DNA from: Octopus sinensis
Taxonomy: Eukaryota
NCBI RefSeq assembly: GCF_006345805.1
Contig: NC_043007.1
Location: 74,276,001 to 74,340,000, forward strand
DNA length: 64,000 bases
Direction of reading: 5' to 3'
Below the pieces are notes generated by a model, which was not told the DNA's origin, did no database searches, and worked only from the letters and a program-made list of their open reading frames with translations. Both the position numbers and the translations under genes were made by a program. This document shows, piece by piece, positions 41,201-44,200 of the stretch (its first letter is position 1; each line of letters starts with the position of its first letter).

Positions 41201-44200
41201 CCCATAAAATTATCCTCCAGCTTTCCAACAACAATCTTCAGTACCTTTTTGAATTCCATTTGTCTAACACTCATGGAGATGCTTACAAAATTGAAAAAAA
41301 CAACACAGAACCCGTGACTTTTGGAAACATTCTTTCGTGCCCAGAATTGCTACCAGTTGTTATGTCAGGACGCTACATCCTTCAAAACTTCCGTGCTTCC
41401 TGCAATTTGCCAAAAGTACACCTGATACCTTCCACCTTCGTTTTTTAAACAATTCATTTACTGTTCACTTTCTGTGAGTTATTCTATGTACTATATAAGC
41501 ATTTTTGACTACCTTATCTGATGAGTTGTAGTGCACCTGAGCACTGTATACAATAAGTTTATTATATATATAATCCAAAAATATCAAAGAAATACAAGAA
41601 AAGGCTTCAGCTGCTGTTCCCTTTACTCTCTCTCTCTCTTTTACTCTTTTACTTGTTTCAGTCATTTGACTGCGTCCATGCTGGAGCACCACCTTTAATC
41701 GAGCAACTCGACCCCGGGACTTATACTTTGGAAACCCAGTACTTATTCTATCGGTCCCTTTTGCCGAACCGCTAAGTAACGGGGGACATAAACACAGCAG
41801 CATCGGTTGTCAAGCAATGCTAGGGGGACAAACACAGACACACAAACACACACACGCATATATATATTATATATATATATATATATATACATATATACAA
41901 CGGGCTTCTTTCAGTTTCCGTCTACCAAATCCATTCACAAGGCTTTGGTCGGCCCGAGGCTATAGTAGAAGACACTTGCCCAAGGTGCCACACAGTGGGA
42001 ATGAACCTGGAACCATGTGGTTTGTAAACAAGCTACTTACCACACAGCCACTCCTGCGCCCCCTTCACTTTTGTATTTCATTTTGCATTGTTTCAACCTT
42101 AGAAAGCTTTTATGGAGTTTAAAAAATATTATATATTACTTTATTTCTGTTTCAAGCAAAGCTAATTTAAATTTAATATCAGTTAAATACAAGGCAGTAA
42201 ATTTAGACTGGAAATTGTACGAGTCAGCTTGAATTGACATACTCTTTTACTCTTTTACTTGTTTCAGTCATTTGACTGCGGCCATGCTGGAGCACCGCCT
42301 TTAGTCGAGCAAATCGACCCCGGGACTTATTCTTTGTAAGCCCAGTACTTATTCTATCGGGTCTTTTGCCAAACCGCTAAGTGACGGGGACGTAAACACA
42401 CCAGCATCGGTTGTCAAGCAATGCTTGGGGGACAAACACAGACACACAAACATATACACACACACTTATATATATATACATATATACGACAGGCTTCTTT
42501 CAGTTTCCGTCTACCAAATCCACTCACAAGGCATTGGTCGGCCCGGGGCTATAGCAGAAGACACTTGCCCAAGATGCCACGCAGTGGGACTGAACCCAGA
42601 ACCATGTGGTTGGTTAGCAAGCTACTTACCACACAGCCACTCCTGTGCCTGTGAGAAAGAGAAATCTTTAAAGTTTTTAAAACTGAAGTAAATGGTGCAT
42701 CATCTCATTTACTTACCCATTCTGTCCTGTTTCAGCTTGACCTTGTAAAGTTATAGTTCCATTCTTAATCCAGTCAGGAATTTCTTCAATATATGGAACA
42801 TCCTGTATGAAATAGTAAAAGATTAAATGCTTATAGCCCAAGAACCAAGCCACACTCTTGGAGGGATGGGGAGAATAAAGTCAATTATATATATATGTGT
42901 GTGTGCGTGTGTGTTTGTGTGCGTGTGTATTTGTGTGTGTGTGTGTGTGTGTGTGTGTGTGTGTGTGTGTGTGTGTGTGTGTGTGTAGAAGGATGAAAAG
43001 GAACACATGAGTTGATATATATGGAAGAAAAGTCAAGATAGAAAATGCTAAAATAATTTTATAAAAAAACATTTCAGTACCGGTTTCAGTCATTGAGACT
43101 TTTTCAACTGTAATAATTAAACAATTAAATTTAGAAAAATTAAAAGAAAGTTTTTTTTAAAAGAATATTTGTATAGTGTTCAAATACAAGTGGCATTTTC
43201 CTTGTTTCTGCCTGTCTCTGTCTCTCTTGTTTACTCTTGTGGGTTCCAGGTCATTGTGAATTCTTGGTAGGGAAGAAGATGAAGAAGAAAAAGAAGGAGG
43301 AGGAGAAGGAGAAGAAAAATGTGGGAGTGCCAAAATACTACTGTCATGGCACTCCCACATTCTTCTTCTTCTCCTTCTCCTCCTCCTCCTTCTTCTTTTT
43401 CTTCTTCTTCCCTACCAAGAATTCACAATGACCTGACCTGGAACCCACAAGATTAAACAAGAGAGACAGAGACAGGCAGAAACAAGGAAAAGGCCACTTG
43501 TATTTGAACACTATACAAATATTCTTTTAAAAAAACTTTACTTTTAAGTTTTCTAAATTTAATTGTTTAATTGTTACAGTTGATAAAGTCTCAATGACTG
43601 AAACCGATACTGAAATGTTTTTTATAAAATTATTTTAGCATTTTCTATCTTGACTTTTTTTTCCATATATATATATATATATGTATGTATACTTTATTTA
43701 AAGCAGCAGAAAATTCAACAAAACCTGTTACTCTGAGTTTCACGTTCCCGTTCGTCAGACAGTTTTTGCTAGAATATATATATATATATATAATATATAT
43801 ATATATATTTACTTGTTTCAGTCATTTGACTGTAGCCATGCTGGAGCACCACTTTGAAAGGTTTTTAAGTTGAACAAATCAACCCTAGGACTTATCTTTA
43901 TATATATATTTCTTTACTACCCACAAGGGGCTAAACACAGAGGAGACAAACAAGGACAGACCAAGGGATTAAGTCGATTACATCGACCCCAGTGCGTAAC
44001 TGGTACTTAATTTATCGACCCCGAAAGGATGAAAGGCAAAGTCGACCTCGGCGGAATATGAACTCAGAACGCAGCGGCGGACGAAATACCGCAAAGCATT
44101 TCGCCTGGCATGCTAATGTTTCTGCCAGCTCATTGATATATATACATACATACATAGGCACAGGAGTGGCTGTATTGTAAGAATCTTGCTTCCTAACCAC

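Follow-up and report, generated by a model that had tools for sequence, protein, structure and literature searches.

A Minimal Hammerhead Motif of Penelope-Like Element Type in the First Coding Intron of an Octopus Galectin-4 Gene, Most Likely a Silent and Truncated Remnant

Results

The Galectin-4 Gene and the Hammerhead Motif in its First Coding Intron

We analyzed a stretch of 64,000 nucleotides of the Octopus sinensis genome (assembly GCF_006345805.1, contig NC_043007.1, positions 74,276,001 to 74,340,000 of the forward strand), hereafter called the window, whose numbering is used throughout. Its minus strand carries a tandem-repeat galectin-4 gene of this Octopus vulgaris-group genome, and the first coding intron of the gene (49570..42803) contains, in sense orientation, a minimal type-I hammerhead ribozyme motif resembling those of Penelope-like elements (PLEs). 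Galectin domains are encoded on the minus strand by exons at 40491-40703 and ~18930-19144. The 63-aa galectin exon had no match in a word-based protein search and an exhaustive HMMER protein search was used instead, in which the closest relative was galectin-4 of Octopus bimaculoides (P0129), a tandem-repeat galectin of 311 aa; a further relative, P0271, is a galectin-4-like protein of Octopus vulgaris. With these proteins, tblastn placed eight coding exons on the minus strand, running from 49633 to 17140. The acceptor of exon 2 follows ~925 nt downstream of the predicted cut site of the hammerhead. A near-perfect and possibly MITE-like foldback of 658 bp (43015-43672, 91% self-complementary) lies ~210 nt upstream of the same acceptor, and a multi-copy short interspersed element (SINE), which begins at 43808, flanks the hammerhead unit on the side opposite to the foldback. 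The foldback is also found in O. vulgaris (locus L084, 8308-8966), and its arms have ~90 nt in common with 37675-37763. The features to which the following analysis refers are:

49571..49633, minus strand: galectin-4 coding exon 1 (located by tblastn using P0129 and P0271; identity to O. vulgaris 100%; GT donor at 49570)
43725..43762, minus strand: minimal type-I hammerhead motif (sequence; only descriptor match in the window; covariance model R1, 40.5 bits, E=2e-8)
42716..42802, minus strand: galectin-4 coding exon 2 (tblastn; AG acceptor at 42804-42803)

The motif was the sole match of a custom-written structural descriptor for hammerheads run over the whole window. Read on the minus strand from 43762 to 43725, it is CTGT CTGACGA ACG-GGAA-CGT GAA ACTCAGAGT A ACAG. 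Three helices surround a complete core, which consists of C3 U4 G5 A6 C7 G8 A9, G12 A13 A14, the A15.1/U16.1 pair and an A at position H17. Stem I (CUGU/ACAG) has 4 bp, and four more A-U pairs are possible past an A.G mismatch; stem II (ACG-GGAA-CGU) comprises 3 bp, with GGAA as a GNRA loop at its end; helix III, ACUCAGAGU, is palindromic over 9 nt, with an A at the center. This last helix would form 3 bp and a triloop in a monomer and 8 bp with an A.A mismatch in a dimer. Indeed, CTC A GAG cannot close on a loop of 1 nt, so that helix III of the monomer is limited to 3 bp with a CAG triloop. The cleavage site is GUA and its A (H17) is located at 43729, which predicts a cut between 43729 and 43728. 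The pair 10.1-11.1 is A-U and not the usual G-C.

These results can be compared with the initial annotation, made from the sequence before this analysis, which had placed a fully canonical minimal hammerhead at 43720-43767 in the first galectin intron, on its sense strand, with a 650-bp foldback on one side and a SINE on the other. Exon mapping places the motif in the first coding intron on the minus strand as described, both neighbors are where they had been reported, and the GUA site leads to the same scissile bond, 43729 to 43728. The interval covers the motif but includes 5 nt of flank on each side of 43725-43762. As for "fully canonical", every core base is present; the wording is nevertheless slightly generous in view of the A-U pair at 10.1-11.1 and of the loop of 1 nt that cannot be closed.

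A loose regular-expression search for hammerheads produced many overlapping trivial matches and was set aside. Likewise, a second candidate on the plus strand (29474-29497), with CUGAUGA, a perfect 5-bp hairpin (AGUCC-AAC-GGACU) and GAAA, was rejected; no helix III or cleavage-site pairing was found for it in either a type-I or a type-III layout, and it is probably due to chance.

How often such a motif arises at random was estimated with 1000 dinucleotide-preserving shuffles, in which the loose descriptor gave 0.052 matches per window, or 0.021 if helix III had to be at least 3 bp long. At this rate, a genome of Gb size would contain thousands of random matches, and therefore a descriptor match is weak evidence by itself. 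The Rfam hammerhead models did not match at gathering score in the whole window, nor at E<=10 in the region 43600-43900. However, the same models also failed to detect the hammerheads in all of 16 PLE loci used as a control, so that their silence on the motif is uninformative. The non-randomness of the motif follows instead from a family-specific covariance model, with which it scores 40.5 bits (E~2e-8 per window), and from its sequence homologues, which are described below.

Relationship to the Hammerheads of PLEs

The comparison was based on 82 loci, namely two contigs that encode close homologues of the PLE-like open reading frame (ORF) present in the window and 80 metagenome loci that encode relatives of this ORF. 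An alignment of all their hammerheads made with MAFFT misaligned helix III, whose length varies from 8 to 10 nt; therefore, the seed of the covariance model was limited to the class with a 9-nt helix III. The resulting model, R1, was built from 11 hammerheads of PLE loci with the octopus motif left out. Applied to the 82 loci, R1 identified 78 hammerheads in 66 loci, with scores from 21.5 to 56.5 bits and with 75 of the 78 on the ORF-sense strand. They are compact type-I hammerheads located directly 3′ of the PLE ORF and repeated upstream of it where a terminal repeat exists. A short quasi-palindromic helix III recurs among them (e.g., ACUUUAAGU and ACUAUUAGU); for instance, the hammerhead of locus L001 reads GUAGC CUGACGA GUG-GAAA-CAC GAA ACUUUAAGU A GCUAC. 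In the alignment of these hammerheads, which was itself fitted to R1, 90.5% of the cells are paired as compared to 61.3% after shuffling, and covariation of the three helices is strong, with a score of 0.738 as compared to 0.182 after shuffling and to at most 0.098 in controls with slid partners.

When the window was searched with R1 with filters off, three matches were obtained:

43724-43763, minus strand: the galectin-intron motif, top match in the window (40.5 bits, E=2e-8)
2481-2541, plus strand: decayed hammerhead in the 3′ UTR of the window's own PLE (21.7 bits, E=0.0023)
7391-7431, plus strand: third relic, in which GGAA replaces GAAA (15.9 bits, E=0.084)

The score of the galectin-intron motif falls in the middle of the range of true members. 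Moreover, its stem I and helix III are shared with the hammerheads of L035, L007 (2499-2540), L005 (306-347) and L082 (14-61), which are found ~200 nt past a PLE ORF; in L035 (2881-2922) the sequence is CCUGU CUGACGA U CGC-AAUA-GCG U GAA ACUCAGAGU C ACAGG. The A-U state at 10.1-11.1 is a minority one, seen in 4 of 64 distinct family members. On the basis of these sequence comparisons, the motif is a member of the PLE-type minimal hammerheads, neither a chance motif nor a gene-specific device. That it is a minimal hammerhead of PLE type had been proposed from the beginning, and the type-I layout, the R1 score and the near-identical copies in ORF-bearing PLEs all agree with it.

Position 10.1-11.1 is variable in the family as a whole. 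A non-standard pair, often U.U, occupies it in 40 of the 64 distinct sequences (loci L001-L082, alignment A5), a state of the PLE clade that contrasts with the G10.1-C11.1 pair described as highly conserved.

The window also contains PLE sequences of its own. As a pair in inverted orientation, the ORFs 92..1285 (minus strand) and 1535..2275 (plus strand) code for the C-terminal portion of a reverse transcriptase, to which a Cys-rich linker and then a GIY-YIG-like block are joined. Pfam assigned no family to these two ORFs at E<=0.01; their identity was set instead by homologues and by GIY-YIG and CxC-type motifs, and the PLE-like ORF has 164 homologues with 36-51% identity. The decayed hammerhead at 2481-2541 begins ~200 nt past the stop codon of the plus-strand copy and reads GAUAA CCGAAGA [long stem II] U GAA ACUCAGAGU U UUAUC. 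In this sequence U4 is changed to C, helix III (ACUCAGAGU) is the same as in the galectin intron, and a 13-mer, UGAAACUCAGAGU, is common to both hammerheads. After a further ~30 nt it is followed by a (TA)n tract.

Two observations concern the surroundings of these relics. The plus-strand PLE copy has a 3′ UTR of 300 nt and ends at the (TA)n tract at ~2575, and the layout of the region 1-2575 agrees with the arrangement published for PLEs as an inverted 5′-truncated copy. The third relic (7391-7431, plus strand) reads CCAGA CUGAUGA AGGG-CAACAA-CCCU GGAA CUAGU C UCUGG, and a GIY-YIG-like ORF fragment (7926..8198) is found near it on the opposite strand.

Anatomy of the 83-nt Insertion

In the orientation of the galectin gene, the hammerhead belongs to a unit of 83 nt (43692-43774) bounded by simple repeats on both sides: (TA)n, 12 nt, the 38-nt hammerhead, 33 nt, and again (TA)n. 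The parts of the unit and of its borders, in this order, are:

43775..43808, no strand: (TA)n microsatellite that borders the unit upstream (Tandem Repeats Finder, 43774-43808)
43763..43774, minus strand: 12-nt stub, uucuagcaaaaa, 5′ of the hammerhead, taken as the 5′ truncation point (sequence; (TA)n directly beyond)
43692..43724, minus strand: 33-nt 3′ segment from the hammerhead to (TA)n, the presumed 3′ end of a retroelement fragment (distance like that in PLE loci)
43663..43691, no strand: imperfect (TA)n/(TATG)n tract that borders the unit downstream (sequence; O. vulgaris alignment), probably the second half of the microsatellite hit by the insertion

PLEs have been described to insert preferentially into microsatellites including (TA)n, to be frequently 5′-truncated or arranged in inverted order, and to end with a terminal "tail" of 30-40 bp linked to the internal initiation of reverse transcription (PMC8557442, PMC11167929). 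In the PLE loci, a (TA)n tract of at least five units occurs in 20 of 75 distinct contexts downstream of the hammerhead, and in 11 of these 20 it starts 25-39 nt past the hammerhead. The corresponding distance in the galectin intron, 32-33 nt, lies inside this cluster. The other downstream contexts mostly run into the next tandem copy, recognizable by a conserved GAGCAC box that is present in 42 of the 78 matches. As for the copy number of the unit, self-BLAST detected no second copy of its 80-nt core in the window, and Tandem Repeats Finder and self-BLAST found no tandem repeat of the hammerhead-bearing unit there, which is thus single-copy.

The Locus in O. vulgaris and O. bimaculoides

The window is 96.6% identical over 34 kb to the corresponding O. 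vulgaris locus (L084), where the hammerhead is present with identical sequence and the same R1 score (40.5 bits). The 220 nt around it are also identical except for the length of the microsatellite; in particular, the (TA)n tract at 43775..43808 differs in length between the two assemblies. Since the flanks are equally identical, the match at the motif is uninformative as to selection. R1 found no hammerhead in O. bimaculoides (L083), yet the intron contains an N-gap at the relevant place. This run of N (L083 4295-4443; GCA_001194135.2, CM046611.1) lies in galectin-4 intron 1, flanked by the SINE and by the (TG)n tract preceding exon 2, at the very place expected for the orthologous hammerhead and foldback, and the assembled intron 1 is ~4.3 kb shorter than that of the window. 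Because the gap spans the orthologous region, we do not claim that the hammerhead is absent from this species.

Predicted Folding and Search for a Partner Copy

Folding of the monomer with ViennaRNA, which ignores the tertiary structure of the core, assigned -2.8 kcal/mol to the hammerhead fold vs. -12.6 kcal/mol to the minimum free energy (MFE) structure, corresponding to a probability of ~2e-5. In the competing MFE structure, the core segment GUCUGA pairs with UCAGAG of helix III. With the same program and the same limit regarding the core, a two-molecule double hammerhead reached -17.2 vs. -27.0 for the MFE of the dimer. The active hammerhead fold is thus predicted to be a rare conformer.

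Besides the motif itself, R1 had no other significant match on the minus strand, either between 17140 and 49633, i.e., in the 32-kb transcript, or elsewhere in the window. With no second sense-strand match in the transcript, formation of a dimer in cis is therefore impossible.

Other Features of the Window

Several further observations were made on the galectin gene and on the rest of the window. The top matches to the octopus galectin exon are a group of very large predicted proteins with many galectin domains (P0121-P0128), among which P0121 has 3214 aa and 21 matched stretches. The galectin exon located at 27817-27930 is directly preceded, when the gene is read 5′ to 3′, by a long G/C-rich low-complexity run (27971-28271), with poly-Gly, poly-Trp and poly-His ORFs in several frames. 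Finally, positions 59829-62431 are occupied by a 490-bp satellite (5.3 copies, 98% identity), with at least one inverted fragment near 62621.

Discussion

A Probable Truncated PLE Remnant in a (TA)n Microsatellite

Three results, namely membership in the R1 family, near-identical hammerheads in PLEs and an 83-nt unit flanked by (TA)n, argue for a severely 5′-truncated PLE or PLE-derived insertion. In intact PLEs, the ribozyme is located in a terminal repeat directly 3′ of the reverse transcriptase/GIY-YIG ORF, and its short quasi-palindromic helix III allows two copies of a tandem transcript to pair into a double hammerhead. At the galectin-4 locus, a severely 5′-truncated copy, or one mobilized by a PLE, would have split a TA microsatellite in the first coding intron; with one copy at the locus, the RNA is expected to be inactive or to react very slowly. 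That the motif has the sense orientation of the galectin pre-mRNA would most likely be incidental and galectin output unaffected. Taken together, we consider it highly probable that the motif is a lone, 5′-truncated 83-nt remnant of a PLE, or of a non-autonomous element mobilized by PLEs, inserted in (TA)n of the galectin-4 intron, and that its RNA is silent or very slow and its orientation incidental.

Some points weigh against this interpretation. The 83-nt unit between the two (TA)n tracts is accompanied by no PLE ORF or terminal repeat, which is nevertheless expected for a 5′-truncated copy. The closest relatives are found on contigs from marine metagenomes. The core of the motif is intact while the two other PLE-type relics of the window are mutated, which suits a young insertion and would also suit retention. 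Regarding the predicted inactivity, the nearest-neighbor energies ignore the tertiary structure of the hammerhead core. In addition, a helix III of 3 bp with a triloop has a little more stability than the 1-2 bp that are usual in the class, which leaves room for weak activity of the monomer.

As an alternative, the unit could be the monomer of a non-LTR (long terminal repeat) retrozyme, or of another small non-autonomous hammerhead element circulating as circular RNA, and not an autonomous PLE that has been truncated. Animal retrozymes do carry type-I hammerheads for which an origin from PLE terminal repeats has been reported (PMC7229834, bioRxiv 10.64898/2026.07.22.740005), dispersed monomers occur, and with 83 nt the two origins are indistinguishable. 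Nevertheless, we regard a retrozyme as unlikely, given that neither Tandem Repeats Finder nor self-BLAST placed the unit in a tandem repeat of the window and that the closest relatives found are ORF-bearing copies of PLEs. Its 83 nt are also far below the repeat sizes of retrozymes, which are reportedly in the order of 170-400 nt.

Expected Activity and Possible Effect on Galectin-4

A different question is whether a truncated PLE remnant in this position still cuts its host transcript. The initial annotation had noted that minimal hammerheads of PLE type typically act as dimers, and this is indeed what has been reported for this kind: no cleavage of a single minimal PLE hammerhead was detectable in vitro, while dimers and trimers were cleaved weakly (PMC4209133; PMC6765202). 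In an Anolis PLE, no RNA-seq ends were found at the hammerhead site, and insertion in vitro did not need cleavage (PMC11167929). In engineered introns in vivo, slow hammerhead cleavage left splicing efficient (Dye 2006 and Fong 2009, as reviewed in PMC2995048). Finally, intronic location is not exceptional for related elements, as ~43% of the retrozyme copies of Xenopus are intronic (bioRxiv 10.64898/2026.07.22.740005). Considering the folding predictions together with these precedents, the lone hammerhead of the galectin intron is most likely a silent passenger, and we infer that it has neither activity nor function at this locus, whereas the motif itself, the family to which it belongs, the structure of the insertion and the surrounding gene are shown directly.

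The opposite possibility is that the motif has become an exapted intronic ribozyme, which would cut the nascent galectin-4 intron 1, as a monomer or by pairing with a second pre-mRNA, and thereby tune expression. Its sense orientation at a distance of ~925 nt before the acceptor of exon 2, a core that is intact in contrast to the mutated relics elsewhere in the window, and its identical sequence in the O. vulgaris assembly would all fit with such a role. However, the surrounding 220 nt are just as identical apart from the microsatellite length, in a locus with 96.6% identity; the transcript contains no partner copy; the active fold is predicted to be rare; and loop-loop tertiary contacts are not evident. 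Furthermore, single minimal PLE hammerheads were inactive in vitro (PMC4209133), splicing was unaffected by slow intronic hammerhead cleavage (PMC2995048), and intronic copies are commonplace, as the frog retrozymes illustrate (bioRxiv 10.64898/2026.07.22.740005). We thus hold exaptation to be very unlikely, and the chance that genuine cleavage affects the host gene to some degree is just as slim. Slightly less probable still would be that the solitary hammerhead with its intact core cleaves the nascent galectin-4 pre-mRNA, either with the help of chaperones or as a monomer that relies on the 3 bp of helix III; it would then be a retrotransposon ribozyme domesticated recently in the O. vulgaris lineage, where it would reduce galectin-4 expression or set its timing. 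Accordingly, of the two outcomes that had been put forward at first, nicking of the nascent intron with an effect on galectin output is not upheld for a lone remnant with no partner copy and a fold predicted to be rare, when published monomers are inactive and splicing is unaffected in the cases described, while silence as a monomer appears to be the better-supported branch.

The least probable explanation of all is a chance match, one of the many that a loose descriptor gives in an AT-rich, Gb-sized genome: the expectation of 0.05 per 64-kb window (thousands per genome), the lack of any Rfam hammerhead match even at E<=10 and the single copy of the unit in the window would be compatible with it, but the R1 E-value of 2e-8 per window still corresponds, by a rough calibration, to roughly 1e-3 over an assumed genome of ~2.7 Gb, the near-identity with hammerheads of ORF-bearing PLEs extends to stem I and the 9-nt helix III, the motif bears the end signature of PLEs with (TA)n, and the Rfam negative carries no information when the 16 PLE loci are missed as well.

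Significance

Hammerheads of PLEs are already known and are scattered in large numbers across invertebrate genomes, so that the truncated PLE remnant of the galectin-4 intron represents one more copy of this kind. More general is the observation that the Rfam hammerhead models miss the whole PLE class (0 detected in 16 loci), as a consequence of which genome annotations would under-report PLE hammerheads, while a small family-specific covariance model can tell real PLE-derived copies from the many chance matches of a descriptor. If the motif were active in vivo, for which no evidence was found here, nature would offer an example of a host pre-mRNA that is cut by the ribozyme of a retrotransposon.

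Comparison with Known Hammerhead Systems

The intronic hammerheads HH9 and HH10 of amniotes are reportedly deeply conserved, with loop-loop tertiary contacts and efficient cleavage as monomers. Like them, the octopus motif is a sense-strand hammerhead in an intron of a protein-coding gene; unlike them, it lacks evident tertiary contacts and has no match to the Rfam models HH9 and HH10 in the searches described above, and its conservation is seen relative to a single genome that is 96.6% identical. The double hammerheads of newt satellite 2 and of avocado sunblotch viroid (Forster et al. 1988 in PMC4209133) share with it a helix III inadequate for the monomer and an activity that comes from the pairing of two copies, but there the transcripts are multimeric whereas the octopus hammerhead is a single copy inside a pre-mRNA. 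Animal non-LTR retrozymes (PMC7229834; Li et al. 2026 bioRxiv) likewise have type-I hammerheads with an unstable helix III, a tie to PLE terminal repeats and frequent intronic copies; the octopus unit differs from them in having neither a tandem array nor the length of a retrozyme.

The closest counterparts are the minimal PLE hammerheads. The octopus motif differs from these in being a solitary 83-nt remnant without ORF, terminal repeat or tandem partner, and therefore the dimer mechanism is unavailable to it, and in the minority A-U state (4/64) of its 10.1-11.1 pair. It agrees with them (Cervera & de la Pena 2014, PMC4209133; Lunse, Weinberg & Breaker 2017, in PMC6765202) in the type-I topology with an open stem I, the short quasi-palindromic helix III with C15.2/G16.2 and the compact stem II, as well as in a sense-strand location close to the 3′ end or the terminal repeat of the element.

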